Source: Basidiobolus meristosporus CBS 931.73
Lineage: Eukaryota; Fungi; Basidiobolomycota
NCBI GenBank assembly: GCA_002104905.1
Contig: MCFE01000348.1
Span: forward strand, 25,434-89,433
Length of the DNA stretch: 64,000 nucleotides
Direction: 5' to 3'
Shown here: positions 31,129 to 56,485 of the stretch, piece after piece
Layout of the letters: every line of letters begins with the position of its first letter
Position numbering within the stretch: the stretch's first letter is position 1
Notes under the pieces: generated by a model
What the model was told of the DNA's origin: nothing
The model's input: the letters and a program-made list of their open reading frames with translations, nothing else
Database searches by the model: none
Position numbers and translations under genes: made by a program

Positions 31129-31926
31129 TCAGTGTGGCTCAGGGATGATCGTGACAAATCCATTTGGATCGACCAGCTCAGGCTTGTTGAGAGGCTCCGT
31201 ATTGTTTCGATTCTTGATCCCTCGGCGTTTACGCAGATAGAACACGAGAAAAACGGCGCCTATGGAGCCTACGACCCCAAGGCCGATCAGGATATATCCC
31301 CAGACGGGGAAGCGGTTAAAGTCGTCGGTATCGGTGCAGATTTTTTTACGGTCGCTGCAGTTGTTCGAGAAACACTGACGATCCTCTTGGCAGTTCTCCC
31401 CATTGTTGTACGAGGGGATGCATTGCAAGGATAGACTGTTGCAGAATGTCCCCTTCACACAGTTGTCCCGGGTGACTCCGACGAGGGTTGCGTTATCAAG
31501 ATTACACGTCTGGTTTAGCTGGACTTCTTTGAGGACGCAGCGTTGACTTAGACATACGCTGGCTTTCCCGGCGCACGAATCGTCTCTTCCGGGCGAGCAG
31601 GCGTCTCCGGTCTTGATTTTAGGCAGGCATTTCAGTTGATCATCGGGACAAAATTCCGACTCAGCATTGCATAAGGCAGGCTGCTTCCATTCCGCTGGCC
31701 ACCCCAGCGGAGACTCGTTGAATTTGCACCCTTTCAATGTACACTGGTTGTTTGCGGGATCGCAGGCTAGTGTGTAATTGTGGCAAGGCCCCTTCTCATG
31801 CAATTGAATATTGGGATTGGGCGAGCATGTGTCGCCTATATTCGACGCTGAGACGAGAGTACAAATGCCGATGAACCAAACCCATTTGCCAGGCAAGCCG
31901 ATGCTATGCATTAGGGCGTTTTCAAA
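31129..31926 (-). CDS. Cysteine-rich type I membrane protein
   Basis: Signal-like N-terminus from the Met near 31926, ~20 Cys ectodomain, TM WGYILIGLGVVGSIGAVFLVFYL followed by RKRR. Confidence 0.8.
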   Translation of the reverse strand, partial: FENALMHSIGLPGKWVWFIGICTLVSASNIGDTCSPNPNIQLHEKGPCHNYTLACDPANNQCTLKGCKFNESPLGWPAEWKQPALCNAESEFCPDDQLKCLPKIKTGDACSPGRDDSCAGKASVCLSQRCVLKEVQLNQTCNLDNATLVGVTRDNCVKGTFCNSLSLQCIPSYNNGENCQEDRQCFSNNCSDRKKICTDTDDFNRFPVWGYILIGLGVVGSIGAVFLVFYLRKRRGIKNRNNTEPLNKPELVDPNGFVTIIPEPH

Positions 31927-32560
31927 TGATTCCTGCACGAGAAGGGTAAATCTCTGGGAGGAGCGCTGGTTTCTTATGGACGTAGCTTCTCCAAAAAGCG
32001 CCACCTAGAAGGAGGTTTAAATGACAACTGCGAGCTCAATCTTGAACCAACCGGTTGACTTATATAATCTGAGTGGGATTATTCACGACAATGGACATTG
32101 ATGAGGAGGCATTCGACTTGCTCGCCCTTCACCTCGTCGTCATAATCCATTGTACGCTAGCCATCCTCCGACGATCGGAGACTTTTACGCTTTTCTGATT
32201 GTTTCTATACAGCTACGCGTATTTGCAGTTTTGGGAAATGGCATGATCGACTGATAAGAAGGCATCCATCTATCCATCCAGATATGGAGCAAGTCATTTC
32301 ATCAAAATCGAAATGGATGCACACCAAAAATTCTTTCAGGTGGATACAGGGCAGGCAGATGGTTGGGTGAATTCGACGATCCCTCTCGATGGCTAGCCCA
32401 ATAGGCGGTGGCCGCCCTAAAGCGCACGAAACGTGGTGTGGCTTGATGTGGGCTGATAAGAAGCCGATAACTCAAAATTGTCCGAGTTAAACTTTATTGG
32501 GCAATATATAAGCTCCTCCCTACTGACCGCGTTTCGTTTCCGACGTATCGCTTGAGGAAA

Positions 32561-33366
32561 ATGGGCTCGCAAATCTTGGTTCAACGTTCGAACACCAAGC
32601 TATCCTGTCAGCAAACGGCTCAACATCCCACTCTCAAACTAACCTCTCGGCAAAGGGTTCAGCTCTGGATGAAAGCCATAAAGCACGCGCAAGTAGACCA
32701 AGTCAAGAGTCTGTTGAAGCGCTATCCTGGCCTCATTCGGGCCCAGGTTGCGGAGAAAATCCCTTACCCGACCAGCATCCCGGCCGACGTCATACAGATC
32801 CTGGGCGAAGATACACATAATCTGACCGGCCTTCACTATTCGCTTCTCTACATGATTGCGGAAAAATCCCGGAAGGCCAACACCTTGAAAACATCCAAAA
32901 CCTTCGAGGCAAGAAGCTGCATAGTTGCCCTTTTGATCGAGGTAGGCTTGTTCTTGCTAGGAACTGAACAGAATCACCCGGAAACTTACTGAGATCATGG
33001 TTATAGCACTCAACATCCGGTGATATCAACGATCTGTGCTGGGGTTTTGCCAACACGGCAATGCACTTGGCCGCACTGACCGGCGATGAAAGTGTCATCT
33101 ACAATATTTTGAACAAGGGTGGAGAGTCCGGTGCATCCAACCTGTTTGGCATTTCTGCGCTTGATATCATTGACAACACGCGGAACTTACAGGCCTCATG
33201 GATTCACCACAGTACTGGTGACAGTAAGCAGCATTCATCAACTAGACAAGAGAGCTTCGATTGCGCAGAGCGTAGAGGCCGCAGTCGCCAATGCAAACCC
33301 CTTAATGATACTGTAAAATATTTTCGTGGTGAATCTGACACTGACTTCAATAGGATGTTTTATTGA
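32561..33366 (+). CDS. Ankyrin-repeat protein, 2 exons
   Basis: LTGLHYSL; after the intron at ~32942-33007, WGFANTAMHLAALTGD..LLNKG....N.FG.SALDI. Confidence 0.75.
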
Positions 33367-33615
33367 GGTGAGGTGAGCAATATCAAACCACAAGAGATCG
33401 TCCTTCTTTGGGCGATACCAAGCCAGGCTGCGTCCTTCGCAACGCACAAGAGGTTGTACTTCTGGCCAAGACAGCCGTGGATCCGACTACCAAGTTCAGA
33501 TCCATCCGAAATCAGTGATTCATGCATTTACTTAGACAATAAAACAATCCACTTCCCATAAGATCTCCCAAATATTGACCATTGGATTTTTCAATTTCCT
33601 CTCTTGTCTCCGACC

Positions 33616-34790
33616 ATGTCGCAACGCTCTTTGGGAGAAAGCTCGTATCAAGCCTCGCAAAGGAATGAGCCTTCCACCGACCCGTACTTCGACCCCACCT
33701 ACGCCACAAAGATCGGTTCTTACCTGACCGATTTCGACTCTCTACTTAACCAAGTCACTGAAGCATACGGCCACCTGACCGAGGCAGCGGTCGATCTTGA
33801 AAACATCAATGACGAGGTAGTGAGGCCAACCCAGCTTTCCTGAAGCACCGGCACCTAACCAGCTCGAACCTCCCCCAGGTCCAGCCCTTAGATGACGGGG
33901 TAAAAAAGGTGATCGACGTCGAAGCGCAGCTTAAACTTCAGCAACGACTGTTAAACGACATCAAGATGAGGATTTCCCGCGGCGAACAGATAGTAAGGAA
34001 CCAGCACCACAGAAGCCTCTCACCCCATCAACCCACGATTTTTCTTACCTCTGTGTCTTCTCTCAAGCCAAGTCTGGTGCAGCACTTCAAAAACGAATAC
34101 AGAAACGCGCTCCGAAAGTGGAACGAGCGCACCGAGGATGTCCGGTATCTAAACAACGAGAACTATCTCGACTTCAAAGCGAAAGTCTGGGTATGGCTCC
34201 CCGACCTCCCTTGGATTGCCCGAACTCGGCAACTTAAATCTAGACTTGAATATATGTAGGAGGTGAACCATCCCAACGATCCCATGCCCCCTTTGGTCGA
34301 TGATGGAGAGCAAGACGAGGACATCATGGTTATGAGCACCTCGACCGTGACGCTGAAATGCCCCATCACCACCACTTATCTTGAAGATCCAGTCACAAGG
34401 TGCTGTAAAGCAACACTAGGCAGCATGGCTTGGAACCACGTCTAACCAATTCTTCAGTCAAGTGTGCAAACATAGTTTCTCGAAGGAGGCCATCGTAACC
34501 CATATCCGTCGAACACAAACCACGGCTGCCGCCTGTCCAGTTTCAGGTCCGGTATTTATCAACGTGAGCCATGCGTCGAGCATATATTCATTTTGTCCAC
34601 AGGGTGCAACAAGTTCATCAAGATCTCGGACCTGAAGCCCAACAAGTCGTTGGCCCGCAGAGTGAAGCAGCATTTACAATCGCAGGGGGAGGAAGAGGAG
34701 GAGGAGGAGGTAAGGGACCACGCGTTCCCATTCTCGAGTGAACACCCGGCTAACCCCTTTTCAGTACATGGATGTAGAGTAGCTGGAGAT
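33616..34790 (+). CDS. MMS21: NSE2/MMS21 SP-RING SUMO ligase of Smc5/6, multi-exon (3' end approximate)
   Basis: TLKCPITTTYLEDPVT..CKHSFSKEAI..CPVSGC..DLKPN SP-RING preceded by a long helical region. Confidence 0.85.
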
Positions 34791-34967
34791 TTGTACATAA
34801 ATATAGATTTGATTGCTTTTCCCATCAATTCCCATCAATTCAATAAACCTTGCTTAAAAATCTCCATTGATTGATCAATCTTCCGGATCTTGTCAAATGG
34901 CGACCTGGTGAGTGGTTATGCATAATACCCACCATTCCATCATCCATCCTTGGGTATAGTCTTTGAG

Positions 34968-36623
34968 ATGTCAGAGGTAGATGATTACTTCCACACTCTA
35001 ATCGAGTCCACCGTCGGACCTTCTCAGAAGGAACTCGTAAAGGAAGATTGGTGCAAAGAATATCTAGACCATCTGACGGGTCTGTCCCTGAATGAGCTAC
35101 GCGAAGAGCCGGTGTTGCTAGAGAAACGGGAGAAAGAGGTGACCGAAGAGCTCAAGGAGCTGGCGAAACGAGAATACTTGGGCTTTGTCAGCGTTTACTC
35201 CTCTTCCGAAACAGTGTCCAGCACCCTCTCGACCATCGACCACAAATTAAATAGCCTACTCTCGGTGTTGCCCTCGCTGGAGAAGTCGTACGTCTCCTTC
35301 AACGCCGAGGTGACCAGCATCCAGGCCGACCGCAGCAAGTTATCCCTGATACTGAACAACTACAACAACCTGCTGGAGGTTCTGGAGATCCCTCAGTTGA
35401 TAGATACTTGCGTAAGAAATGGCTACTACGCCGAGGCTTTGGAGCTCTCTTCACATGTCAGGCGCTTGTGCCTACGACACCCGACTGTAGATTTGCTCGA
35501 GCAGGTCTCCCAATCTGTAGAGAAGTCCATCGCCCACATGCTGTCGCAATTGCTGGTACTTCTACGCGGACCAATCAAGCTTCCCCTCTGTTTACGGGTG
35601 ATTGGATTTTTGCGACGTATGGAGGTTTTCGACGAGGCGGAGCTTCGAGTGCTGTTCTTGAAGTCGAGAGACGCCTACTTTGAGCAGCTCGTCCACGAGC
35701 TCTCGGTGGAGATGATCGACCCGGTGAAGTTCCTGCGCAGATATATCGACCTGTGCAGAGACGAGTACTTCGACATCGTGAGCCAATACCAGGCCATCTT
35801 TGCGGAAGAGGATTTGGACCCGAATGAACGAACCTCGACCAAGGTCATCTGCTCCGACTATATATCGCAGATTGTTGTTCGATTCACCGCCACCCTTACC
35901 AAGCACACATCCGCCATCCACGACATAAGCGCGCTCTCCTCCCTACTGACGCAGGCAATGTTCTGCGGCATGTCTTTGGGCCGCATCGGACTGGACTTTC
36001 GTCAGATCATCGGGAGCATCTTTGAACGCCGAGTCAGTGTGATCGTTAAGGAATTGATCGTCGACGGGACCGAGGAGTTCCAGCGGGAGATCGAGGAGGT
36101 GATGAAGAAGAACGTCTCATGGCTGACCAACAACAAGGCTCTCACTACCGAACCGGCCAAGACCACCAGCAGATCCGTGTTTGCACCACCCACCTCGTTG
36201 GTGAACTTCCCACCGCTCGCCCGACTCACCAACGCGTTCCTTTCCGCCTTCAACTCGCTGCGCTTACTGGCCCCCATCTCGATCATGAGAGATCTGAGCA
36301 TCCAGATCGACCACTCCCTGATGGACGCAACCAAATCCATCCAGTCCTACGCCGCTCACAAGTCGGACATCTGGTCGAGTCGGCCGGAGGAGAAGGCGAT
36401 CTTCGAGAGATTCTGCGAGCTGTTCGTCAACTCGTTCATCCCGTACATCAAGCGATGCTTCGTCGAGGGGGTGTACGCCGACATCCTCTTCACCGAAGCG
36501 AAGGCAAGAGACATCCTCCCGGTTGAGCCGATCCTGGAGGTGTTGGGAGGCTACATCAAGCCACCCGCCAACAACTCACCCACCACCGAAGAAACCAACC
36601 AACCCACCCTATCTCCTGCATGA
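34968..36623 (+). CDS. COG8: Conserved oligomeric Golgi complex subunit 8 (Dor1)
   Basis: LLEVLEIPQLIDTCVRNGYYAEAL, LPLCLRVIGFLRRM, AMFCGMSLGRIGLDFR. Confidence 0.95.
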   Translation: MSEVDDYFHTLIESTVGPSQKELVKEDWCKEYLDHLTGLSLNELREEPVLLEKREKEVTEELKELAKREYLGFVSVYSSSETVSSTLSTIDHKLNSLLSVLPSLEKSYVSFNAEVTSIQADRSKLSLILNNYNNLLEVLEIPQLIDTCVRNGYYAEALELSSHVRRLCLRHPTVDLLEQVSQSVEKSIAHMLSQLLVLLRGPIKLPLCLRVIGFLRRMEVFDEAELRVLFLKSRDAYFEQLVHELSVEMIDPVKFLRRYIDLCRDEYFDIVSQYQAIFAEEDLDPNERTSTKVICSDYISQIVVRFTATLTKHTSAIHDISALSSLLTQAMFCGMSLGRIGLDFRQIIGSIFERRVSVIVKELIVDGTEEFQREIEEVMKKNVSWLTNNKALTTEPAKTTSRSVFAPPTSLVNFPPLARLTNAFLSAFNSLRLLAPISIMRDLSIQIDHSLMDATKSIQSYAAHKSDIWSSRPEEKAIFERFCELFVNSFIPYIKRCFVEGVYADILFTEAKARDILPVEPILEVLGGYIKPPANNSPTTEETNQPTLSPA

Positions 36624-36742
36624 TAGCCGTTTCCAAATAAACCCGTGTAGCATTGTGAAAAGATGAATTATATTATAGAGATGTTACAAGGGCTTGGTAC
36701 ATATAAACATACATAAAACTACAGCGATTTAGATCCACGGCC

Positions 36743-37792
36743 TTAGTAAGCTCGTTCGCAGTCGGGAAGCATCGCCTCCATGTATGATGGGAGAGTGATG
36801 GCGGCTCGAGAGTAGCGCGGTGGCGCATTGTATTGACTACTCAGCTCAGGAACAATCACCACCGGCAAGCTGGTGCGGATCTTGCTGCGCGCGCCGTAGG
36901 CGTCGAGTATCTCGATTTTAGCGGTGATCCGGTGCTCGACCTTGATGAACGAGCTCTGCCCGTCATACGACATGATCTTCTTGTCGGGGATGGCCAGGGA
37001 CCAGGTTTTCTGGAAATCGTCGCCAACGGGAACCTGGGTTTTGTGGGATACCCGGGTGATCACCTTGCCCCAGGGGCCGAAGTCTCCTTTGCTGGGAACG
37101 TGGTAGCTGGTGTTCTGAACGATCCCCCAGCAGACGTTCTTCACGCGCAGGCCAGTGATTAATGGGTCTATGCTGACCGTGATGTCGATGCTCTCCTTTG
37201 GATGGAAGAAGTTCTTGGAGATGGTAAGCTCGTAGTCGAAGCGGTCCTTGCACGTGCCTTTGCTGCTGGCATGGGTTTGCGAGAAGCTCCAGAGAGAGAA
37301 GAGCCGGTGGATATGAATCTTCTTCTCCGCCGTGAGATTCCCAAACAGGCCGGCTTTCTCAGCGACCCCTTTGAGCTTGTACTCAATAGCTCCGCCCTCC
37401 ACTTGCATCGAAGGCGGCAGCTCGCTCTTCAAAGGGAGCTCGAAGTTGTATTTGTACTTGCCTGCGGCAAGCTTCGTTGGTTTGTCCGCGGTGTCCAGGA
37501 AAGTCCATGCGTGAGAGATCAGCAACTCTTGATGGGACCCGATGTCTATGAAAAGCATACCGTTAGATACACATCATCGCAACGAAAAGTCCACACTGGG
37601 GTTACCGCAGGAGCTCTTGTGACTGGAGAGCTTCACTTTCCCTTCGAAGGACAATCGGACGGTTTTCAGCTTGGTCGTTTCCGATAGGTCGAGCATCAAA
37701 CAGCCTCGTAGCACGCAGCCAGCCGACTCCTCTGCAGCGCCTAGCATGACTAGGTTGTCCTCGAGTACCAATATCGTAAATCGAGAAGACAT
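36743..37792 (-). CDS. Alpha-arrestin, 2 exons
   Basis: LRG.LMLDL, GKYKYNFEL.L..ELPPS....GGAIEYKLKG; C-terminal PPRY and LPSY PY motifs. Confidence 0.9.
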
Positions 37793-37978
37793 TTCTGTAA
37801 ACGACTTGATGCAGCTAGGGGAGGATTCTTCTTTATCGGTCCTGATAGCCCAAATAAACCTTATAAAGAAATTAGATCAATCGAAGGCGGACTGATCTCA
37901 TATTGATTGGGTCATCGGTGGATTCTTTTTGCCGATGGGATATAGCTAGGGGACGGTGGATGGTGGATAGGTCTGTTT

Positions 37979-38112
37979 GGGAAATGCATTTGTAATGGTT
38001 TGGCTTGGTTGAGCAGACATGCTAACTTTGGGATATGCATTTGTAATAGCATAGCTCGCTAACTTTGGGATGTGCATTTGTAATAGCATGGCTCGCTAAC
38101 TTTGGGAAATGC
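37979..38112. repeat. 37-bp tandem repeat in the divergent arrestin/thioredoxin promoter
   Basis: gctaactttgggat.tgcatttgtaatagcat.gctc at 38021 and 38058, partial copies at 38095 and ~37979. Confidence 0.8.
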
Positions 38113-38252
38113 CTGGAATTTGGTTGCTTTAATAGACTTTCTCGACAGTTGCATTACAAATAACCACCCAACCAACACTTGCCATCCCGAGGGGAGCTCT
38201 GGTATAAAGAGAGCTGGCGCACGCCTGTCCCACAGTATTCAACCCAACCAAC

Positions 38253-38631
38253 ATGGCCATCCAACACATCCACAGCGTATCTGAATTCGAAGAGTTGCTC
38301 AAGAGCGACAAATACGTCATCGTCGACTTCTTCGCCACCTGGTGCGGGTATGTATTCTGTGTCCACCGGATGATCACCAGACTTGGTACTAACCACATGG
38401 ATTTCTAGACCTTGCAAGATGATCGCCCCCAAGTTCGAGAAACTCGCCGGAGATTTCCCCAACGCCATCTTCGCCAAAGTGGATGTTGACGAGCTGCCGG
38501 ACATCGCTGCATCGGCGTCGGTCCGTTCCATGCCAACCTTCCATATTTATAAGGATGGTCAGAAGGTCGATGTGATCGTTGGTGCCAATCCTACCAAATT
38601 AATTGGTGCGGTGACCGCAGTCCTGGCATGA
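38253..38631 (+). CDS. TRX: Thioredoxin, 2 exons
   Basis: VIVDFFATWCG|PCKMIAP with intron 38348-38408 splitting the WCGPC motif; TATAAA at 38203. Confidence 0.97.
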
Positions 38632-38711
38632 TCGTTATGTAATGTTACACTTTTAGTTAAATAAATTCCGCTTTTTATTCCTTGTTCGGCTGTGGTGTAG
38701 AGAGGGGCAGC

Positions 38712-40191
38712 TCAGTAGCCCAGCTCCTTCTTGCGAAGCGACAGTGCTTTGGTTCGCATCTCGAACCACCACTCGGGAACCCGTGAGATGGCCCCATTGG
38801 TAAGGTCGGAGAGACGGTTGCAATATTCCACCTCTTTGGGTCCCTTGAGGATGTGCCCATCTCTTCCAGGCGCTAACTCGGTTAACCTTTGATACCATTC
38901 CCTCATCTCCTTTCGTCCAGGGAGATCGGTTTTTCCGGCAAACACCTGAGCAACGTATGTCGACTGATATTGGAACAGTGGGAACGGGACCACTTTCACC
39001 GGTAGCCCAATAAAGGCCAATGTGGGGTTGGGGATGTAGAAGATTTGTTCGTATACGTTGTGCACCTTCATTCCGTCGGTGATGATCACTTCCTCCTCTT
39101 CAACCTTGGTGTTGGTTCGCTCGAATTGACTCAGAAATGGGTAGGAATAAAGGTAACCAGTGGCAAAGAGTATGATGTCTGGTATGTCCAACTGGGTCCC
39201 ATCCACAAAATGTATCTTATTGTTGGCCACGTCAATCAGCTTCATTTCGGGTTTGATTTCAATCCTGTTGTCTGAGGCCGACCCGGTTCCCGGGGCTTCA
39301 CCTATATCGGCACTTCCCTCCTTCTCTCTGATAGACTGATATACATTCTTACACTGAAATGATAAATCGCGCGCAATATCGATGGCGGAAGATGCTCCAC
39401 CTACTACCAGCACCACCTTGCAAGAGAGACACATGTCATGAGATCCTGCATCAATAGCATACACATCGTCAGGTCCACTCTACCTTCCCCTTGAAGTCTT
39501 CTGGTTTTTTGTATTCTCTAGAATGCAACAACTTGTCGGGCCGTTTCTCTGAGAGTTCGTCCAATCCATTGATATTTGGTATGAAGGGAACGTAGTAGTG
39601 CCCTGAGCAGACTATGACTGCGTCAAACGCCTCGGTGGATATTTCCCCCTCGGTGAGTAAGGTTAGTTTCCATTCCTCATCCAGATAATCCATATGCTGA
39701 ACTATGGTGTTGAACGTTACTAAAGGTAGAAGCTTATTTTCCTCGGCGAAAGCCTCCAAGTTTTCCAAGACATGGCTGTGGCTTGGGAAAAGCGGCGTGT
39801 CCTCTGGGAAAGGATGGTTCTTGAAGGACATCACAGGATGAGGAAGGTTTGTCCTCAAAGTGCTGTAAATACTGCTGTTATAGTGGCGAGGGGGCGCCTC
39901 CGGATCAGCAATCAACGGATCCACACTTGGAAAATAAACTTTCGGGCCTTTCTTATCTGAGTATATCCTAAAGGAAGAATCAGTACCAGCCGAAAACCCA
40001 CGAGGACTGCCCATATCTCACCAAGTCCCGCCAATTCGAGAGTTTCGCTCGAAGATTTTGATTTCAGCGAAGTGTTGTTGGCTAACCAGTGACTTGGCAG
40101 TTGCCAGTCCAGCAGCACCGGCGCCAATGATAGCTATGCGTTTAATTGGCTTGGTAAAGCGATAGGCATGTGCTGGAGGTAAGACAGTCAT
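38712..40191 (-). CDS. FMO1: Flavin-containing monooxygenase (fungal FMO1-type), 3 exons
   Basis: IAIIGAGAAGL, IGGTW, CSGHY, LLHSREYK, VVGGASSAID, ATGY motifs. Confidence 0.93.
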
Positions 40192-40509
40192 GGTCACTTG
40201 GTACTTGTAAACACAAACGTAAGCTACTTTTCTGGTGGAAAGCAACGAGGCGTTTGAGGTATTTATGCAACGTCACGAAATGATGGGATTGTCCGCCATC
40301 CCGGTGTAACACGACTATCATATTTCGGAGTCCAACATCAATGTAGTCATCGAGTTCCAATACTCTATTCAGCTTGGTTATTCCGTTTTCCAGCTGAAGT
40401 TCGACTGCGTGATAATTAGATCTTTTAAATCATTCGAGTATATGTCAAATGGGGTAATATCCATCAAACGGATTTATATCTCCATCGTTACTCATTCATT
40501 GTTTATCTG

Positions 40510-42306
40510 ATGGATGTAAGGGTGCCAAGTCTGGTAGCTTTAACTATCCAGATAGTAGCCAGTTTTCCCCCTGGTCGTATTTTTCGGTGTGTATGGCCCG
40601 CCTTACGAAGATCCTGGCGTCAGCAAGTCCTGAAGTTGTTGTCACCCCTGCAGTTGCTTATCCTAGACGAATTACTTGCAACTAGTGGCGATAATAGCGC
40701 AATTCCTTGGCCTAGTTCACATACCCCAGGCACTTCAGGAACCAAGGAGGAGTACTGCGAAAAACTATGGAAGCAGCATTGGTCCGATATAGTATTTCTT
40801 CATCAGCCAGACGTCCAGAACGCTGGCTGTGAGCGAGATTGTGCTTTGGAGAGAGTAGCAGCCGAATTGTTTTTCTGGAGCCGGCCATCTCGGCCCGGTC
40901 ATGAAGACAAACGCATAAAGCATCTATCACTTAGTTCAAAGCTAAGCAGTCTGTTGCAAACGCCTGGCTGGACCGACATTCTACTGTCAGGGGAGTTTGT
41001 GGAGGACAAGACACCCTTGGATTTGGTGTTCTCCTTGATCCTCAAAAACGTTCAAACACTCAAACTTCATCACAGCTTTCTTTCTCGAACGCGGCTGGAG
41101 CCTGTACTAAGGAAGCTTACTGGTGTCCGCCACTTGGAGTTCCACACCTTACTTACACAACCGGAGATCGGCCAAAACGTCAAGCTTTTGTTCCAGAATT
41201 GCGACCCAAGGAAGCTGACCCGAGTGGGCTTTCTATTTTGCAAGTTGCATGACCACGGTGTGTTTCGAGAGATTCTGGAATCCCTGGCAGCGCTGTTCGA
41301 CGTGTCTTTTGAGTACAAGCTTCACTTGGAGCTGGTGTCGACCAGGATTCATACTGCATCCATTGATGTTCTGGGTAGCTTTCTGTCCAGAATAGCTGTT
41401 CATACACTCCGTTTGTCGTCGAATGACTCGGACGATCTAGAGATCGGATACTTGGTCGACAAGGCAATCAACAAAGCCCCACACATAACCGAGATCAGAA
41501 TCACTGATAATGAAGTTGGCGAGGCGACCTTGAAAATCCTCGGCGATCTACTGTCGTCACCAGGGTGTCAGATGGCGACCTTGGATTTGGCCAACTGCGA
41601 TCTGGATGGATGCGCCATACCGCACCTAACCAAGAGTCTTTGCGTTAACAAGTCGCTTCGTACCCTGGACATTTCCGATTCTAGTTTAGGCCCGCGTGGT
41701 TCACAGGCTTTTCAGGAGGCCTTTCAATGCAACAGAGGGATCCGCCACATCAATCTGGATCATTGTCAGCCAGGAGTTGACGGTAGCGCACGTCTTTTGG
41801 AGGGACTGCTAGGCTGTAGCGAGTTGGAGAGTGTCTCTTTTCTCGGGAACTTCATCAACAACGAGGAGTCCTTCCGAGCCCTCTTGAGGCTCTTGACACT
41901 GCATCCGGCCCTGCAACATATGAGCATTGATTTTTGCTTCAGCAATGCCACTGGGTTTTCCTTGAGCGACCGGCTGTTCCATTCTCTTTCGCGCGTCACC
42001 CTGAACTCGTTGTCGCTTCCGAATAGCCGGTTTTCTGACAGAGCCATTGAGCCTTTGGTGAGACAGATCCAGGGCCACAACCTCCATCTCTTGCAGATAA
42101 ATTTGTGCGGCAACCATGTCACCGACGTAGGACTGGACCAACTTTCCATAGCGCTGGCATCGGGCCCCAATTCCAGGCTGGTTCTAAACCTCGCCCACAA
42201 CCGCACCACCAAACCCAGCAGCCACCCCAACATCAGGCTGCTGAATGAGAATCCTACCCGCGGAAGGATCCGAATGACTTCCCATGATGGGTTTGACGAA
42301 TGGTAG
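40510..42306 (+). CDS. RNI-like leucine-rich-repeat protein with a BC-box-like N-terminus
   Basis: 598-aa single ORF; repeats LRLSSND, LDLANCDL, LDISDSSLG, INLDHC, LSFLGN, INLCGN. Confidence 0.85.
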   Translation: MDVRVPSLVALTIQIVASFPPGRIFRCVWPALRRSWRQQVLKLLSPLQLLILDELLATSGDNSAIPWPSSHTPGTSGTKEEYCEKLWKQHWSDIVFLHQPDVQNAGCERDCALERVAAELFFWSRPSRPGHEDKRIKHLSLSSKLSSLLQTPGWTDILLSGEFVEDKTPLDLVFSLILKNVQTLKLHHSFLSRTRLEPVLRKLTGVRHLEFHTLLTQPEIGQNVKLLFQNCDPRKLTRVGFLFCKLHDHGVFREILESLAALFDVSFEYKLHLELVSTRIHTASIDVLGSFLSRIAVHTLRLSSNDSDDLEIGYLVDKAINKAPHITEIRITDNEVGEATLKILGDLLSSPGCQMATLDLANCDLDGCAIPHLTKSLCVNKSLRTLDISDSSLGPRGSQAFQEAFQCNRGIRHINLDHCQPGVDGSARLLEGLLGCSELESVSFLGNFINNEESFRALLRLLTLHPALQHMSIDFCFSNATGFSLSDRLFHSLSRVTLNSLSLPNSRFSDRAIEPLVRQIQGHNLHLLQINLCGNHVTDVGLDQLSIALASGPNSRLVLNLAHNRTTKPSSHPNIRLLNENPTRGRIRMTSHDGFDEW

Positions 42307-42520
42307 TCCTCGGAGCTACAAGAAAATCAATAAAGCGTGCTCTCACCAGTATGTCGTACATCGAATTCATTTGGTGCGTTTGATTGGTTGTAAGGCCTAG
42401 CACATGTAATCAGGACCAGGGGCATTCTCCACTTGTGGGGGCAAGCGGGTACCATCTTTCCACAAGTTGCTGTAAGGATGGCTACGTTTTGGTTGAGGCA
42501 AAGTAGGGCTGTCAGACCTC

Positions 42521-43551
42521 ATGCCTCGTACACAAGTAGAAGCTCTTTGGTACGTGTGCTCAACTGGAACCGAAGAGTTTGCACTTCAACTTACTTTGCT
42601 CTTTGTTCCAGAATGCGCTGCTTTCCTTCAACAGGGAATACAGCACCAACCAGGCCAGAAGCAAAACAGTTGCCGCGTGCATCATCGGAGACGAGATTCT
42701 CAGCGGAAAAACCAGAGATAGCAACTCTCATTTCTTAGGTCAGTGGGCCAAGGCGAGGTTCATTTGCGATAACCGGGTTGGCTAATGTTGGCGTTCTTAG
42801 CGCAGTACTGTTTTGATCTGGGCTTGGATATGCGTCGGATTGAGGTGGTTCCGGACGTCACTGAGGACATAGTAGAAAGCGTCAGGCGTCTCTCGGCGAA
42901 CCACGATTACGTTTTCACCAGTGGTGGCATAGGTTCTCCCTTTCAATGGACTTTCTCCGTGTACACTCGATCCCTCTAACCAAGCTTCGACTTTCGGTAA
43001 TAGGCCCTACCCATGATGATATCACTTATGAAGCAATCGCTGAAGCATTCAACCAAAAGGTCGCCTATCATGAGCCTACCTTGGCTCGTATGCAACAGAT
43101 TTCACCACACCTGGAGCTTACACTACCTCGAAAGCGCATGGCACTACTTCCCGAAAAGGCCCAAGTATTCTATACCAGTCACTCTTTGTGGGTTCCACTG
43201 GCTATCGTGTCGAATGTATACATATTGCCAGGAGTGCCCAAGCTATTCAAGCTGATGTTGGAAGATTACCGGCCTAGCATAGCCACAGAGCTGTCAGGCA
43301 CGGCCAAGTTCCATCGCAAACTGATTGGCACTCTCTGGATGGAGTCCAAGATAGCGCAGGTCCTAAGCGAAGCCCAAAACAACGTCGGGGCGGAAGTCAA
43401 GATCGGCAGCTATCCGAAATGGAAAAACGACACCGTGAACGTGGTCATCTCGTTTGTAGGCAAGGACCTCTCCAAGGTGGAGTCATGCGCCGATCTGGTC
43501 AAGACCAAGATCGAGGGCTTCGACATGAAGGATAATGACAACCCCGTTTAG
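42521..43551 (+). CDS. MoaB/Mog (CinA-N) domain protein, FPY1/FAD diphosphatase-like, multi-exon (start uncertain)
   Basis: CIIGDEILSGKTRDSN, VFTSGGIG|PTHDDIT, LPGVP.LF, IGSYP. Confidence 0.85.
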
Positions 43552-43810
43552 CAAACAGTGTGTAAACCCACCAAGAGTCAACTGTATATATCCAGCTCAC
43601 CCATTTGACCTGTATCTCGCTGGATCGTAAAGATTAAAGCAACCTCCGAAGCTTGGTTTAGAGTTGTCGTATGCGTGAAATACCCAGCATACCCTTTATT
43701 GTACAGGTAACCAATTTACAAGAAGTGGAAAGTTCGTTCATGGCGTATCTCGCGAATCATAGCTACCTTCTCACCACCCCGTGAAGAGCATGGGGAAAGC
43801 CAACAAACGG

Positions 43811-44609
43811 TTATATGAACAGTTTGATTACGTCTTTGGCTTTCAGCCGCTTGTTGCAGCATGGACACTTTTTCATCTCCACCACCCTGTCAACACAATC
43901 TTGGCAGAAGACATGACCACACCCAGTGGCGTGCATGCTTTGTGGGCGTTGCTCGCACTTGGCACACACAATCAAGCCATCTTGTTCGGTCGGAACATTG
44001 ATGCTGTAGCCTTTCCCTTCGAGTTTGGTCAAATTCTCAGGGACCTTCGTTGGACGAGGGCGCTCTACCGGTGGCGGGGTCGGGCTGTGGTTGAACTCAG
44101 TCTCGCCAGTATGGAACAGGTGAAAAGTTTCGGGAAGCGGAAAAGTTGAGTCGATCGGCATAAGGTTCCGGCCAAACAGATTCTCGAACGCTGTTAGGAG
44201 GGTTGGGATTAGATTTAGAGTTGGCTTACTATGGTTGGCGGTTGCGAACGAATACTGGCTCTACCATACCATGTATGAATCGGAAGTCTGAATAAACCGA
44301 GTTCAAGAAATCGTAACGAGGCGATCGTCGACGGCGGGGATTAGGGCGTCTACTAGCCCGTTGATTGCGACCGGAGCTTGGTGCGCTGCGTGTGTTGGGA
44401 AGAGTCGAGTGTGTGGTGGGCCGCACCTCCGGCTCATCGTCACTCTCGATGGTTATCACTTGCGACTCTGCCTGTGCGTTAGTTCGTGGGCGCCAAGACG
44501 GAGCGTTAGGCGTCAGGTCAATGACTTCACTTGGGCCTGAAGGCTCGGAAGGTCGGAAATCTACATTATGGCTGGCGATGGGAATGGGCATACTGTCTAG
44601 ATCGTCCAT
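43811..44609 (-). CDS. C3HC4 RING ligase with SIM-like motifs (RNF4/Slx8-like STUbL); further 5' exons likely up to ~45300
   Basis: C-terminal CAKC..CGHVFC..C..CPCC..KLFI; VIDLT and VITIESDD motifs. Confidence 0.75.
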
Positions 44610-47845: not shown

Positions 47846-50800
47846 CTAACCCCATACATCCTCGTTATACTTTCCATCGTGTTGTAGTCTCTGGAAGTAT
47901 TCATTGGCTTCTTCCTTCTCTAGTCCTCCAACCTGCTCAAAGATGGAAAGCATCGTGGCGCCAACATCCTTTGCCATACCGGAGGCCGAACCGCATACGT
48001 AGAGCGCTCCTTTCTTGTTATGGAGCACATCCCAGACCAAGACCGAGTGGGCTAGCAATTGATGTTGAACATACTTTTTGGCTTCACCAGTACGCGAGAA
48101 TGCGACCACCAGCTTGTCGAGAGTCCGACATTGACGAACTCCTCCAGCTCTTCCTGGTAAATGAAATCCTGCTCTGGTGAACGGCAGCCAAAAAACATGT
48201 ACGTTTCCGATACACCTCCCTTACTTACGGATTTGCAGCCATTGAGTTGACGCTCCTGAAGGAAGCCTCGGAAGGGTGAAACCCCTGTACCTGCACATAC
48301 CATGATTACCGGAACCTTTGGATCTTTAGGGAGATGGAAGATCTCTTTCACCCCACGGACATTTGCCCGAACCTGGCTTCCCAACGTACGCCTGGACAAG
48401 AAGCCTGAACAAAGTCCGGTGTATTTCCTATCTTCATACCCAATATCCTCAGCTACGCCTACGCATAGGTGGGCGACATTCTTGTAGATCTGTGGGCAAC
48501 TTGCGATGGAGTATCTGCGCTTGGCCATGGTGGACATACCGCACAGGAAACTCCGGAAATCGAGTTTCTTGACCATTGGGAAGTTTCGGATCAGGTCCAT
48601 CATACACCGGTTCTTCCGGATGAATTGCATATAAGCTTCATTGCCCTGTTCCCCCGATTGGCACATATTTTCCAGGTACTTCCTCTCTAGTTCCGGGTGA
48701 GTGTCGGCTATGGCAGATACACAGATGCCAATGAATTGACGAGAGGGAGCTGCGTGAAGATCTGCGTAGTACGTCAACGCGTCGCGAATAGTGCACGGAC
48801 CCTTTATACTCGCTGCCAAGGAACGTGAGCTCAGGCCCGTGCTGGAGGCAGCATCGACGGTTACCTCGAATACTGCATCCAGAGCATATCCGAAGGTGGC
48901 TGCCACGGCTTCCACCACCTCTGGGTCATTCTCTGCCATGATTTCTAGATGATCTCCGGTGTTGTAGGATTGCCCCTCTGACAACTCGATTTCTAAATGA
49001 CGAGTGCTACGCTCACTTTTTGCTGACTGGAGTTCAACGTTCTTACGCACAATGGATGGCTGTCCGGAGTGTTGTTGCATTGGAGTGTCCGCCTGGGGGA
49101 TGTATTTCAATGATACGCCCTCAGTCGGGTTTGATGCCGCGGTGTTTGCAATGGAGCTTAGGTTAGCGCCATCCAATCCAAAGTCAGCTAATATCGAAGC
49201 GTAAAATCTGGCTAACCACTCGGTAAAGTCAGCATCAATATCAGCATCCGCATTACCAGCTCCAGCAGGAAACAATTGCTCCGCTCCCAAATACTCGAAT
49301 CTGTCATTCACCTTTTTGGGGAAAGCCTGGTACGTTCTCCACTGCACGTTGCCGCACCCGAATACCGCATACCGCAAGCCTTTAAGTGGGGTTTCATTTA
49401 CGCTGGTAGGAGCGCTGATGAACTTGTCGAAAAGCACTGCGTTATCAGGAGGTAGACCGTTGTAAGTACTGGTGATAACCAACACGATTGGAGAGTCTTG
49501 ATCTGTGCTTCCTGTGTATTTTCCACTGGTCAGCACCTCCCAGTCATCCAATGGGGTCACCTCAACGTCTTTGAATCCAAGATTTCTGGCGTTGCTGGCC
49601 ACCTTATTGGCGTATTCCTCAGACATCCCCATGTTGGAACCAAAAAGGACCGTGAACTTCGGCAGTTTCATGTCCGACGGAATGCTGGGTAGCGTCAGGG
49701 CGCTGGTGAGTTCGGTGAATGGAGTGGCAGTTTCGGACGGAGGCTGAGTGGTGGGCTGAGGGAAGGAGGTGCGGGGATGGATTCTGAAGTACAGATCTTT
49801 TGGTTTGATAATGTTACCAGAGCCAATGTCGTAGTGAACTGGGCGGTCGTCTGGAAGAGTGAACTCGAACTTTTTCAGCAGCATTGCCTGTAGGACCAAG
49901 GTTAGCAGGTGCGATGACCTTTGCCTCAATTCCACTTACCAGGATGATCTTCGCCTCTTGTAGTGCAAACTGCATACCAATGCATGCCCGCGGACCAGTA
50001 GAGAACGGCAACCAAGAGTACCGGGATCGCTTAGACTCCTCAACCGAACTGAAGCGGTCTGGGTTGAAAACCTCAGGGTCCTTCCTATCGGATACAAGAA
50101 ACAAGAGGTTATCGAAAGCAGCATGGATTTATCCATAGCGGACATACGTACCAGACGTTTGGGTTATGATGCAGAGAATACACATTGATCTGAGCCACCG
50201 TCCCCTTTTCAATGGCGTATCCGAATGGAAGTTTGCAATCCTTGATGCAGTACTTTTGCAAACTAGCTAAGGGAGGGTACATTCTGAGGGTTTCTTTCAA
50301 TACCTTCCGGATGACCGTTACTAACCTACACGCACAGCGTGGTCCAAGATTCAAGCAAATACCTGGGAGAGATACTTCAGCCCGGAGATTTGTTTGATGG
50401 TGGGCAGCTCGTCATCCGCGATCCCTACATTGGAGAGCTCTTGGAGAACCTTTTCCAGGACGGCTGGATGTCTGGCCAAATTGTACAAACACCAAGAGAG
50501 TGTATTCGATGTGGTCTCATGGCCAGCGATCAAGAAAGTGACCACTTGATCCCGAATCACCTCATCAGACAACTTTTGCCCAGTGGCTTTATCTCGAGCA
50601 TTCAACATAAATCCAAGAAGATCTTTGGAACTATCCTGTACGTCGGGGGAGTTCTTCCTTTGGATCATGACCTGTTGTCGTAGGTTAATGGCTGAAGCGC
50701 ACGGCTAACATGCTCGAACATACATCATCTACGGTGTCTTTCATTAGCTGCATCATGCGATCGAATTGGTAGTTGGACCAAATTGGTAGCTTCTTCCAAT

Positions 50801-51950
50801 ATTGTGATCTCGTTGCCCGCGTCTTTACCTCCCTAAAAGTGGACAATATATTAGCTTGGTTCCACAAACAAACGGGCTCCAGCCAACAACCTTAGGCAGA
50901 ATGACATGGCATCGATCTGCATGAAATGAATTTCGGGTGAGCATTGATGGAATTGTTGGGATTGTGCAGAAATTCCCTTAATTGAAAATGGCTTACGAAT
51001 GGGTGAATTGGTGCGTTCTTGGATTCCAATAGGCCGAAATCAAACCCGAAGCCAACCTTCCCAATCGTCTCGAAGGCTAACACCAATTGCGTTAATCGAA
51101 GTACACTTGGTGCAAATTTCATGATCACCTACTAATTTTGGTCATCCATGGAGAGATTAGAATTGGTTCCGACTCGGTGCTTATCTCGTCAACGACGTTC
51201 ACCAACTTTTTGGCAAGCAATGCCATCTCGTGACCATAGGCCTGCAATAGGGGTGGCGATGAGTATTGAATCTCTTGGTCTCTGCGATGAACAATCAGGT
51301 ACCTTCATGGCAGCTGCTGAAAAGGCTGGCATCAGTAGCTTGTGAGCCAGCTTCCAGATTTCCTCGTCGGAGCTTGTTGTGAATAAGCCATCCCCACCAA
51401 TGGCTTTTACCTCTGCAAAAGGCAGTGTGATCCGCTTGGTGAAGTATTCGGTTTCTTGAGCAAAGAGCTCAGCTATGTCTGGATGATTGGTTATCAAAGA
51501 CCGTGTTTGGAAATTGAAGGTTTGAAGAAGTGGGGTATCGTATTCTCTGAAGAATTTGAGCAGCGACCCAACAATGTCCGGCAGTAGGTGGGGGATGGTG
51601 CCAAATAAGGGAACTGTGGGTGGTGTAGGAATCTCCCGACTTGAGACACCGCCGATAGTCAGGTAGACAACATCCAGGCCTGCAAGCTGCTCATAGGAGT
51701 TGAGCTCCTGACCATTTTTGTCCCGAAATTCGATATCCTCATGTCTGGGAATACTCATTCGCTCCCCGCATTCTTTTCTCACATCTTCCAAGCTCCCATC
51801 GGGCTGGATCCTCACGATGATTCCGCTCGAGGCCTCATCCTCGCCGGAAAACGCAACAACGAGAACCTTGGGGTCTACATGTGGACGGGGATCCTGTGCT
51901 GTGCTAGGGATCTTGGCCTGAAAACCTTCTTTCGAATAAAGCTCAGCCAT
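47846..51950 (-). CDS. Self-sufficient cytochrome P450/NADPH-P450 reductase fusion (CYP505/CYP102-like), multi-exon, with a 1-nt frameshift near 48123
   Basis: FLIAGHETT, KETLR, PDRF, FSTGPRACIG; FMN site LFGSNMG; RRYSIAS, AGTGVSPFRGF, FFGCR, YVCGS, C-terminal EDVWG. Confidence 0.95.
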
Positions 51951-53218
51951 GGGCGAATGCAATAGGTGATGCTTGATGCTCACACAGCACCCATTGCGCT
52001 GCTTAAATATGTTCACTGTAATGAAAACATACGGAGCAGAAAAGCCATCCCATCAGTTTACTATCTGCAGTTTTGGTTAATAGAAATGCGCACGCGACAT
52101 GATGGGCTAATCACAGTCCACCCCACCTGTAACTATTACTTCAATATGATTAGCCAGCCATCAGTGCCGGATAGGTAGAATAGGGCCGGAACGTCTGCCG
52201 TAGTTACCGACAAGCTTTGGCCCCTTGCCTTCCTAATTAAGTAGTGGAAGTGCGTCATTGCTGAGAGATGCTCTAATTGATGGGATCTTTGCTCCTCGTA
52301 GTGATTGGTCCCGGATAATAGATACACTGAACCTTAAGTGGGTGTTGATAGAAAGTGGCTCTACTAAATACCACCTATCCGCACCAAAGCATTTAAATGG
52401 TTATGCATATCGTTCATTGTGCTAGGAAATCCTTCGTTTTGGATGTAATATCTACTTGGATAATAATGAGATCAATGTTAACCTCCATGCTCCTCAATCC
52501 TGCTCTTGTTAGTTGCTAGTAATATACATTTGTTATTTTATTTATCCAATCATTCAACTGTAGAAATGCTTTTGAAATTCCAGAACTGTGATGTGGCCGG
52601 TTTGATGGGTTTAATGGCACTGTTTCACGGTTAATCCTCAGTGAGATATGACTTTGAAAACACTTTCCATTACACTAGTAATTTCTCATGATTTAACGTA
52701 ATTTACCCATGTAATCTTTGTAAGTAGCTGCTTAAACGGATTTTATACGTTCTGCCCAAACTTAAAACGAGCTTCGTTTCACAAAATTCGATCTATATGC
52801 TTAGAATAGTAAATGATTGGTGGGTATCTGAGCTGCTGTACTGGGAAGCCACATCTGTTTGTCTATCTACCCAAATGCCAGTTTTGTCATCTATTGGATT
52901 TTCCATCTTACTGGAAATGTGCGACAATTGTTGCGAGTATCATCCCACTAATTCGCCAGGTATTTCGAATGTTGCAAATAATTGTTGTTCCCCAAACTAG
53001 TCACCTGCTTGGGTCTTATATTGTATATATGGCGAATTTTAAGGAAAATTTCAACCCGTTTGAAATGACATAAGGTCGTGTGCACTCGTATTCAAACCTG
53101 TCATTATTGTATATATTTTGATTGGCGTCGGTTTCTTCATATATCATGATTTCCTCCTGGACCAATATTTTCTTAGGAACAAGTAGAGATTCGAATAAAA
53201 TGCATTAGTTTTTCCTGG

Positions 53219-53800: not shown

Positions 53801-54546
53801 CCTTGGTTTCATTAGTTATTGCTGACTCTTGATTCGGATTCCCAAATATGGCAACGATGTTGGCTGAACTTGGTCTGTGTTCCATTATGCAAGTGACCAA
53901 GCGCTACTGCTGGCCATGTGGTATGGCCACCACCGATATTGCTGCTAGTGTTGGCAACTTGTATAGTGCTCACTTCACTATGAATAAGACAACATAGGGC
54001 GAGAGAATCGTTGTCTGCGCTAAACAAGCCACCATTCAGGCCCATACAGATTGATAAGCTCTATTCTCTAGTGTGGCTGAGATCAATAAGCTCAATCCTC
54101 TAGTGCGGCCAAGATCAATATACTCAATCCTCAAATTTCAACTCTGTGGTCAATGTGTGCATTGTACTGTGCAATTTACACGTCTTCTCTTTGCTGACTA
54201 TCAATTTCCAAACTTAGCATCATCACCCAATCTTATTCTCATTACGATGCTGTGTATGGCCAATGATGGGTCGTTGTTCGTATGATGATTTATTGGATCG
54301 TTGTTCGTATGATGATCATATTTCAGATAAATCGCTGGTAGGGAACGCTAATGTCGTTGTATATATCACTAGTGAATCCTAGTCAATGCTTTAGACACGT
54401 CAGAGATTCTTGTGCTACAGAGCAACTAGATCCATTTTGGTGCTGCGAAAGGTGCTTAACGATCTCCAGATATGGAAATTTGTTTGTATCCTGACTTTTA
54501 TTTAAGGACCAAAGCACTCATACAGAGTACCCAGATCTACTCTACC

Positions 54547-56485
54547 ATGCTTAGCACTCCAGTTGCCAGGAACGAACCCTCAGCCAAAACCATTGCCCAT
54601 CAAGAAGAGGTAGCCAGGAGCCTTCCATCCAAGGGCCAAACCGATTTCCAAGATGCCTTCAAGTATCAAGTTGCGACACCCGTCAGAGGCTCCATCGGCA
54701 AGCATTGGACTTTCGATGGGTGGGGCTTTGAGAAGGAAGAGGCGCCGCTATCAGTGAACCCTAGCCTATGGAGACAAGCGCAGCTAAACGATTCGTTTGG
54801 GCTCTTCTATGTATGCGACGGAGTCCATCAGATCCGTGGTTATGATCTCTCCAACATGACCATCATTGATGCTCCACAAGGCCTTATCGTGATTGACCCA
54901 CTCGCTTGTGATGAGACAGCGAGGGCTGGAATGGAGCTGTACTATGGCTCCGTAGGGAGAAAAGCTATCAAGGCCATTATCATAACTCATAGCCATGTCG
55001 ACCACTTTGGTGGCATAAAAGGCGTCATGCCAGAGGACTATAATCCGCTTGAAAAAGAAATTCAGATCATCGTGCCCGATGGCTTCCTTGAGCATGCTAT
55101 CTCGGAGAATGTCTACATGGGCAACGCCATGAGCCGCCGTGCCCAATACATGTATGGACCTTTCCTGCCAAAGGATCCAAAGGGCTTGGTGGACTTGTGG
55201 GTTGGGGAAGACAATCAGTGTGGGAACTGTGTCGTTACTTGATCCCACCGTTACTGTGAAGGAAGACAGGAAAATATTATCTGTGGCTGGGCTGGATGTG
55301 GAGTTTATGCTAGCTCAGAATACTGAAGCCCCGTCTGAAATGATCCTCTACTTTCCTACGCTTAGAGCCTTATGCATGGCAGAAGATGCCACGCACACAC
55401 TACATAATATATACAGTCTACGCGGAGCTGAGGTCCGTGATCCAGTTGCATGGTGGAAGACACTGAACAGAGCTATCTATCTCTACGGGGAAAGGTCCGA
55501 TGTGCTCTTTGCGCAGCACCACTGGCCTACATGGTCCTCAGAGAATATCATTTCATTTCTCTCTAAGCAGAGAGATATGTATAAATACCTGAGTGACCAG
55601 ACTCTCCGGCTGATGAACCACGGTTATACCATGATAGAAGTTGCAAATATGGTGAAGCTTCCAAAGAGCCTTAGTGATGAATGGTACAACCGAGGCTATT
55701 ACGGTTCAGTGAGCCACAACGTAAAAGCCATCTACCAAAAGCACCTAGGGTGGTATAGCTCCAATCCAGCTGACCTGAATACTCTTACTCCGAAGGAGGG
55801 TGCTGAGAAGTATGTTGAATACATGGGTGGGGTTGAAGCAATCTTGACCAAGGCGCAAAAAGCCTACGATGACGGAGAATATAGATGGGTTGCTGAGGTT
55901 TTGAAGCACGCGGTGTACGCAACACCAGAGGAAACTGATCAAGCAAAGGCTCTTTATCAAAAGGCAAGGCTTCTGCAAGCGGATGCATTCGAGCAACTAG
56001 GGTATCAAACAGAATGCGGACCTTGGCGCAATGAGTATTTGATGGGGGCATGGGAATTGCGAAATGGCGTCAACAAGACTCCTATACCTATCGTCAGTTT
56101 GGATGTGGTTGTATGTATGACGCCTGGAATGATGTTTGAATATATGGGGATCCGACTGAATGGTCCCAATGCCGAGGACAAAACAATCAAACTGAACTGG
56201 CACTTCCTTGAAGAATCAGATGAGGAAAACGATTACATGACTCACCTTGTCAATTGTGCTTTCATTCATACACCACAGGTCCAAGCCCCAGAAGCAGATG
56301 CCAAGCTAGTGTTAACTCGTCAACCGTTGGCTAAGATCCTAGCTGATCAATCATCTATTGAGGATGAGATTGAGAATGGTGCCATCAACATCGAGGGGAG
56401 CAAAGAGAAAGTGATCGAATTATTTTCCCTCTTGGATACTTTCAACACAATGTTTGATATCATTACTCCGAATCCCCTTCCTTAA
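54547..56485 (+). CDS. SdsA1/BDS1-type alkyl/aryl-sulfatase (MBL fold, dimerisation and SCP2-like domains), intronless, with a 1-nt frameshift at ~55195
   Basis: LWRQAQLN, QIRGYDLSNM, THSHVDHFGG, EAPSEM, HNIYSLRG, QHHWP, RGYYGSVSHN, C-terminal FDIITP. Confidence 0.95.

Follow-up and report, generated by a model that had tools for sequence, protein, structure and literature searches.

This study concerns a self-sufficient cytochrome P450 gene of the fungus Basidiobolus meristosporus CBS 931.73. It lies on the reverse strand of a 64,000-nucleotide (nt) stretch of the genome (GenBank assembly GCA_002104905.1, contig MCFE01000348.1, positions 25,434 to 89,433 of the forward strand), which is called the window below. 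The gene encodes a P450 heme domain followed in the same polypeptide by domains binding flavin mononucleotide (FMN), flavin adenine dinucleotide (FAD) and nicotinamide adenine dinucleotide (phosphate) (NAD(P)H). Ahead of this CYP102/CYP505-type enzyme, residues 28-100 very probably form a genuine ubiquitin-like (UBL; beta-grasp) domain, as judged from structure prediction, belonging to an ancient family without a Pfam model. The features of the gene, in positions of the window, are listed here with the evidence for each; pLDDT is the predicted local distance difference test score, dN/dS the ratio of nonsynonymous to synonymous substitution rates, and HMM a hidden Markov model.

47846..51950 including the stop codon (-), whole gene, 10 exons, encoding a 1198-residue UBL-P450-FMN-FAD/NADPH protein (exact match of the public protein P0015; Pfam)
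52053..52055 (-), in-frame stop codon TGA, 34 codons 5' of the ATG, with no intervening ATG (translation)
51870..51950 (-), N-terminal tail, residues 1-27, predicted to be disordered, poorly conserved (pLDDT 35-55)
51651..51869 (-), predicted ubiquitin-like beta-grasp domain, residues 28-100 (AlphaFold2, Foldseek, VIA-align, dN/dS, HMM)
51636..51650 (-), short linker from the UBL to the Pro-rich start of the heme domain, residues 101-105 (pLDDT, conserved length)
49741..51635 (-), P450 heme domain, residues 106-575, exons 1-9 with introns; EIPTPP at residues 106-111 (Pfam p450)
49216..49650 (-), FMN-binding flavodoxin-like domain, residues 606-750 (Pfam Flavodoxin_1)
47963..49080 (-), FAD-binding and NAD(P)H-binding reductase domains, residues 796-1160 (Pfam FAD_binding_1, NAD_binding_1)
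48113..48135 (-), 23-nt last "intron" of the public model, lying over a 1-nt frameshift in the NAD(P)H-binding region (paralogue comparison)

The public protein P0015 of the same strain matched the window exactly in ten blocks, from 51950 to 47849, with 100% identity and the same start over exon 1 and 99% identity over the large exon. With exon 1 identical and its start shared, the public model and the open reading frame (ORF) of the window agree in the ATG. This ATG, at 51950, is the first of the ORF, and positions 51620-51950 on the reverse strand translate to residues 1-110. Exon 1 (51950..51303, reverse strand) runs uninterrupted for 216 codons to a GT donor, and its start Met is shared with a paralogue and with Basidiobolus ranarum. 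The window was queried exon by exon, and full-length analyses were performed on P0015. A first-pass annotation, made from the sequence alone, had placed about 105 residues ahead of EIPTPPTVPLFG in the same exon and had seen no transmembrane anchor in them. Both observations were borne out, as the Pfam P450 model starts at residue 108, and residues 1-105, on reading the sequence, have no hydrophobic stretch of membrane-anchor length. The segment quoted in that annotation, GIIVRIQPDG...DVVYL, corresponds to residues 43-97. At the level of sequence comparison, these data confirm that the N-terminal extension is real and more than a chance feature.

The assignment of the enzyme itself was based on its domains. 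The Pfam p450 model matched residues 108-555 of P0015 (E = 1.6e-95), and the Cys-ligand motif FSTGPRACIG, which fits FxxGxRxCxG, was present in the translation of a downstream exon. Flavodoxin_1, FAD_binding_1 and NAD_binding_1 followed in that order C-terminal to the heme domain, and one exon of 1752 nt holds both the C-terminus of the heme domain and the reductase. A heme domain with the Cys motif and fused FMN, FAD and NAD(P)H domains are the defining traits of self-sufficient fusions of P450 with cytochrome P450 reductase (CYP102/CYP505). A further trait, typical of the characterised members, is a start within a few residues of the Pro-rich motif; it is absent here, where 105 residues precede EIPTPP; the difference is an added domain and gives no ground for excluding the protein from the CYP102/CYP505 family.

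In its architecture the protein resembles CYP102A1 (P450 BM3) and fungal CYP505A1 (P450foxy), which combine a class-VIII heme domain, an FMN flavodoxin-like domain and an FAD/NADPH reductase in one polypeptide. The four full-length solved chains aligned to residues 105/106-1197 of the query, with E of about 1e-153 to 1e-158. In contrast to our protein, all solved CYP102-type chains, these four included, have no extension, and their own residue 2-7 matches query residue 105-106. Compared with CYP102A1-type enzymes, the B. meristosporus protein and its fungal clade therefore add a tail, of 27 residues in our protein, and a UBL of 73 residues. P450foxy comprises 1066 residues and is not known to have an N-terminal extension.

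Concerning the fold of the added segment, an alignment of 65 N-termini (A1) served as input for AlphaFold2 and for profile searches. The domain alone was predicted with a mean pLDDT of 77.5, and of about 88 for residues 31-100. DSSP applied to the two AlphaFold2 models gave strands at residues 28-34, 44-48, 73-76, 82-83 and 94-99 and helices at 54-64 and 86-91, with an additional helix at 39-42 in the domain-alone model. The resulting order of elements in the predicted structure, b1-b2-a1-b3-b4-short helix-b5, is that of the beta-grasp topology over about 75 residues. When the model of residues 1-110 was compared with the PDB by Foldseek, the 50 best rows were all ubiquitin, SUMO or UBL chains, with template modelling scores by target of 0.65-0.74, a root-mean-square deviation (rmsd) of about 2.7 A, a probability of 1.0 and E just above 1e-3. 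VIA-align, run against 48,161 representative chains, returned Z of 8-9 for the Rad23 UBL, Hub1, the doublecortin C-domain, the BAG1 UBL and the ubiquitin-like domain (ULD) of TBK1, and of 7.5-8 for CIDE-N, PB1 and the protein kinase D (PKD) ULD. In this comparison 21 chains reached Z >= 8, and a beta-grasp domain was present in all 50 rows shown; Z of 7-8 is common in general, and the uniform family of the matches is the telling point. Since the structural neighbours are effectively tied, only the superfamily of the UBL can be named. AlphaFold2, Foldseek and VIA-align agree with the central claim of the first-pass annotation, a self-sufficient P450 with an extra N-terminal beta-grasp UBL, and of the whole segment only the tail, residues 1-27, is predicted to be disordered, residues 28-100 being folded in the models and conserved in orthologues.

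The evidence from sequence profiles was fainter. The A1 profile matched ubiquitin weakly among PDB sequences (tetra-ubiquitin at 4.9e-5, single copies at about 0.05), and single-sequence searches of NCBIfam and the PDB gave no significant match. Language-model features of the window sequence pointed to KHA (0.90), the ANKRD40 UBL, DCX, CIDE-N and Rad60-SLD. Among the 65 homologues, KHA was touched below threshold by five (best 9.7e-4) and DCX2_DCDC1 by three, and the window sequence reached none of the gathering thresholds of ubiquitin (PF00240), KHA (PF11834), DCX (PF03607) and PB1 (PF00564). The likeness to KHA, DCX and PB1 proposed at first reading thus holds at the level of the fold and fails at that of the sequence, where the window matches no Pfam family. 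The predicted domain shares its beta-grasp topology and size with the UBL of Rad23, Dsk2 and BAG1, the ULD of TBK1/IKK and PKD, doublecortin, KHA, PB1 and CIDE-N (Z 7.5-9.0, rmsd 2.0-3.4 A over 67-80 residues, identity 7-20%). It differs from these built-in UBL families in remaining below all Pfam thresholds and in having no conserved C-terminal Gly-Gly, and in the searchable literature none of them was found reported as fused to a P450. Gly-Gly does occur in the window at residues 100-101, but neither column is conserved (K/S/Q and E/G/D), and the chain runs on into the P450. Because this pair is not conserved and there is no free C-terminus, the UBL is not a conjugatable modifier.

The coding sequence of the domain bears the mark of selection. 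Compared with P0013, the paralogue at locus L001, residues 28-100 (the core) gave a dN/dS of 0.23 at a dS of 0.40, the tail, residues 1-27, a dN/dS of 0.47, and the P450 part of exon 1 a dN/dS of 0.02. Against P0012 of B. ranarum (L002), the proportion of nonsynonymous differences in the core was 0.12, with synonymous sites saturated at a proportion of 0.75, and the tail had an amino acid identity of 28% to B. ranarum. These sequence comparisons point clearly to purifying selection on the UBL core, whose rate of change is about tenfold that of the adjoining P450 part (0.23 versus 0.02). The best-conserved polar positions in the 65 sequences both lie on helix a1, R58 being basic in 82% and R64 in 80%, followed in conservation by G43, G80, D77 and D87.

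The placement of the domain on the enzyme was addressed by folding residues 1-575 with a second alignment, A2, which gave a pLDDT of 90.0 and a predicted template modelling score of 0.87, with values of 83-91 for the UBL. The mean pLDDT of residues 101-110 rose from 55 in the domain alone to 84 with the heme domain, and the length of the linker is similar across phyla. Because the confidence of the linker rises and the linker is short and of conserved length, the model suggests that the UBL is docked in a defined place beside the N-terminal edge of the heme domain.

At the 3' end of the gene, this copy carries a frameshift. Where paralogues and orthologues read EELEEFVNDGTLDKLVVAFSR, the window has EELEEFVNVG in one frame and TLDKLVVAFSRTGEA (TLDKLVVAFSR) in another, and the public model leaves out 8 residues (VNxGTLDK) at a 23-nt pseudo-intron, which masks the 1-nt deletion. 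The frameshift is either an indel error of the assembly or the sign of a recently broken paralogue. It leaves the UBL untouched, and since dN/dS is low, the gene must have been functional for nearly all its history.

Relatives with the same fusion, the search for which the first-pass annotation had proposed, were found across early-diverging fungi. In a first search by phmmer of the 110 residues of the window against 1.84 billion representative proteins, one true relative was returned, P0002, a 1212-residue "cytochrome P450" of B. meristosporus CBS 931.73, in which residues 20-108 correspond to residues 19-110 of the query. A search with P0002 returned relatives (E = 0 to 1e-188), P0015 among them, that belong to Basidiobolus, Umbelopsis, Endogonales, Kickxellomycotina, chytrids, blastoclads and many Mucorales; most have 1185-1225 residues at a query coverage of 98%. 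An N-terminal extension of 80-130 residues was present in about 100 of the 119 relatives in which the P450 start was located, and these extensions align with the pattern LIVxLxG..E..G.II......L...R.LA..KL.I......I.L.D..G..L...D....Q.VVYV. A start within 15 residues was found for the P450 in 86 of 97 further relatives, mostly bacterial. The statement of the first-pass annotation that such fusions normally begin at the Pro-rich motif is therefore correct for bacterial CYP102 and the solved enzymes and does not hold for the fungal clade of the gene itself.

For a comparison across phyla, an HMM was built only from 64 N-termini of Mucoromycota, cut strictly ahead of the P450. It matched all seven Basidiobolus proteins (4e-14 to 2e-5; 2.4e-9 for the protein of the window), as well as eight chytrid (E < 0.01), five Kickxellomycotina and two blastoclad proteins, while in the shuffle control the best of 20 per target was 0.63. 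In a quick IQ-TREE tree of the heme domain (62 rows, UBL columns excluded), the fungal sequences formed one clade versus bacterial CYP102, with a support of 100 in the Shimodaira-Hasegawa-like approximate likelihood-ratio test (SH-aLRT), and phyla were largely monophyletic. The extension state requires only three changes on this tree, namely between bacteria and fungi and in Bifiguratus P0038 and P0099, both of which are without an extension. From these alignments, an N-terminal extension of this size is the rule, present in almost every self-sufficient P450 of early-diverging fungi, and most of the extensions are detectably homologous. The simplest reading of the tree would be a single acquisition at the base of the fungal clade, followed by vertical descent.

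Within Basidiobolus, each genome, that of B. meristosporus as well as that of B. ranarum, has at least four to five paralogues (P0002, P0010-P0016, P0130 and P0137), which fall into two subclades; their tails ahead of the UBL vary widely in length and sequence, and the P450 starts at residue 104-120. A further paralogue was observed at the contig end of B. meristosporus MCFE01000133.1 (L003:5001-7924), where the UBL and P450 part, P0130 (539 residues), is intron-less. P0130 was considered as a stand-alone UBL-P450 protein without a reductase and was rejected, being a split model in which the flavodoxin/FAD-binding ORF was called as the next gene. Also rejected were the other eight phmmer matches, which are repeat proteins adding up many weak stretches (DUF5122 propellers with the motif VRxxPDGSLD, a TPR protein and a polyubiquitin). 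Residues 43-55 (IIVRIQPDGSLED, 51800-51825) resemble the bacterial DUF5122 beta-propeller repeat VVRYNPDGSLD, which led to misleading multi-stretch matches with E down to 4e-6.

The closest description in the literature is that of Aspergillus nidulans CYP540A2, a soluble P450 without a membrane anchor that acts on fatty acids and has a "unique N-terminal domain" of 79 residues, which is folded and for which database searches were empty (Commun Biol 2025;8:1361, PMC12462446). CYP540A2 belongs to the CYP505 clan (PMC4122930), and in an AlphaFold3 model K30 and R36 lie against E83 of the cytochrome b5 domain of its redox partner (PMC12462446). Judged by this published description, its N-terminal domain resembles the UBL in having about 80 residues and a basic pair six positions apart (K30/R36 versus R58/R64). 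CYP540A2 differs in that it has no fused reductase, its partner being a separate fusion of cytochrome b5 and b5 reductase, and in that no fold was assigned to its domain (PMC12462446). A cluster of 70 Ascomycota P450s of 550 residues, contained in the ESM Atlas, matched model residues 27-110 up to the P450 junction (80 residues, rmsd 2.2 A), which suggests a predicted UBL-P450 without a fused reductase in Ascomycota; this cluster is possibly the CYP540 family. When the Atlas was searched again, with the N-terminus of a Mucor protein, no usable match was obtained, and a profile of the UBL and heme domain yielded no CYP540-type protein among the 120 matches listed, which comprised only early-diverging fungal proteins and bacterial CYP102.

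Based on these comparisons, the following mechanism is proposed. The UBL, which follows a disordered 27-residue tail and is joined to the Pro-rich heme start by a linker of about six residues, would act as a docking module for protein-protein contacts, held on a tight tether at the N-terminal edge of the heme domain. R58 and R64 on helix a1 would contact an acidic partner surface, most likely that of the FMN domain in the same chain or in the dimer mate, and this contact would help to place the electron donor on the heme domain. Such docking through the basic pair, which is argued by analogy with CYP540A2, is a possibility that we favour, if only tentatively. In its widest form, the proposal takes the UBL to be a hitherto unrecognised accessory domain of the CYP505 clan in fungi, already carried by the common ancestor of the extant fungal phyla, homologous to the N-terminal domain of Ascomycota CYP540, lost in the CYP505 fusions of Dikarya, and serving redox-partner docking or gating by a basic pair that holds an acidic FMN or cytochrome b5 domain on the heme domain; taken as a whole, this is rather doubtful.

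Several points weigh against this proposal. The UBL fold and its docked position are predictions, the 110 residues of the window matched no Pfam family at E <= 1, and the ATG at 51950 rests on the public model and on conservation. Concerning descent, the Mucoromycota HMM did not recognise Allomyces, Blastocladiella and a few chytrid N-termini, and the relatives analysed include no Dikarya CYP505 sequences, so that a domain ancestral to fungi and lost in Dikarya is unsupported. The comparison with CYP540A2 is drawn from a published description and not from sequence, and the equal six-residue spacing of the two basic pairs may be a coincidence. Moreover, this copy, which is frameshifted in the reductase, may be inactive unless the frameshift is an assembly error.

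Other explanations of the segment should also be considered, among them the roles in oligomerisation or targeting that the first-pass annotation had suggested. The UBL might be a self-association module that builds or stabilises a functional dimer. KHA, PB1, CIDE-N and the PKD ULD act by oligomerising; the segment resembles KHA, a channel oligomerisation domain, in language-model features and weakly in Pfam, and PB1, CIDE-N and the dimerisation ULD of PKD are among its structural neighbours at Z 7.5-8. P450 BM3 is moreover a functional dimer with electron transfer between monomers. However, the oligomerising neighbours are tied with many UBLs that do not oligomerise, the short linker and the confidence in context favour packing on the heme domain over a free arm, and bacterial CYP102 dimerises without such a domain, which makes self-association an unlikely function. 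We consider it just as unlikely that the UBL is a targeting or tethering handle, which would take the position of the membrane anchor and bind a protein partner, whether on a membrane, on a lipid droplet or at the proteasome, for localisation or turnover. The UBL does sit exactly at the position of the microsomal anchor, directly ahead of the Pro-rich motif and without a transmembrane segment, and adaptor and shuttle UBLs (Rad23, Dsk2, BAG1 and parkin) are frequent among its structural neighbours; yet no partner is known or predicted, the gene neighbourhood suggests none, and the conserved surface is the basic pair on helix a1, with no demonstrated match to the hydrophobic patch of proteasome shuttles.

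A UBL without any specific interaction, either as a built-in aid to solubility and folding in the manner of a SUMO tag or as a tolerated relic, appears less probable still. Ubiquitin-like tags are known to aid the folding of proteins fused to them, and the roughly tenfold faster evolution of the UBL relative to the adjoining P450 part would suit such a passive role, but the domain, its surface residues and linker length conserved, has been kept through at least four or five phyla of fungi, and a dN/dS of 0.23 still means clear purifying selection. Finally, the start codon could have been miscalled, the segment then being a 5' leader and not protein, for which the internal Met at residue 65 and the basis of the ATG in model and conservation might be cited. 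This is nearly excluded by an ORF that is continuous with the P450 in one exon, by the conservation of the Met and the domain, at a dN/dS far below 1, in the paralogue and the orthologue of B. ranarum, by the homologous domains in other phyla (about 100 relatives with the extension), and by the confident fold prediction. A docking module at the heme edge is the reading tentatively retained here.

The genomic neighbourhood was also surveyed. An alkyl sulfatase gene of the metallo-beta-lactamase fold (Lactamase_B, Alkyl_sulf_dimr, Alkyl_sulf_C; 54472-56485, forward strand) stands head-to-head with the P450 gene, about 2.5 kb from its start, and appears as two overlapping ORFs in different frames, with an intron or a frameshift near 55140-55240. 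A sulfatase releasing long-chain alcohols might be co-regulated with the adjoining fatty-acid-type hydroxylase. On the other side, the part of the window from 31000 to 44000 contains housekeeping-type neighbours, and nothing in it resembles a biosynthetic cluster around the P450. The genes found there are as follows.

34950-36623 (+), Dor1/COG8-like
36743-37558 (-), arrestin-fold
38712-40014 (-), FMO-like flavin monooxygenase, two ORFs
40510-42306 (+), 598-residue ORF, no Pfam match
42946-43551 (+), FAD synthase fragment

Searches of the open literature gave no report of a ubiquitin-like or beta-grasp domain on CYP505, CYP102 or a self-sufficient P450. The first-pass annotation had not recognised the architecture as described, and in agreement with this no publication came to light in which the N-terminus of a P450 is given a ubiquitin fold, the nearest being that on the 79-residue domain of CYP540A2 (PMC12462446). 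What is added here is an unrecognised, ancient and conserved accessory domain on a known enzyme architecture, in proteins that are already public under generic names.

Self-sufficient P450s rank among the foremost biocatalysts and serve as the standard model of electron transfer within a P450, and the mechanistic and structural work on them so far rests on enzymes without the UBL. A conserved and ancient ubiquitin-fold module on the heme domain of most early-diverging fungi would imply an unstudied layer of control, by partner docking, dimerisation or localisation, and may explain the orphan N-terminal domain of CYP540A2. The domain is of relevance to the heterologous expression of P450s from Mucorales and chytrids and to the definition of a new domain family for annotation. 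If the docking reading in its widest form, extended to the whole clan, is true, the UBL would be a new component of the electron-transfer architecture of P450s.

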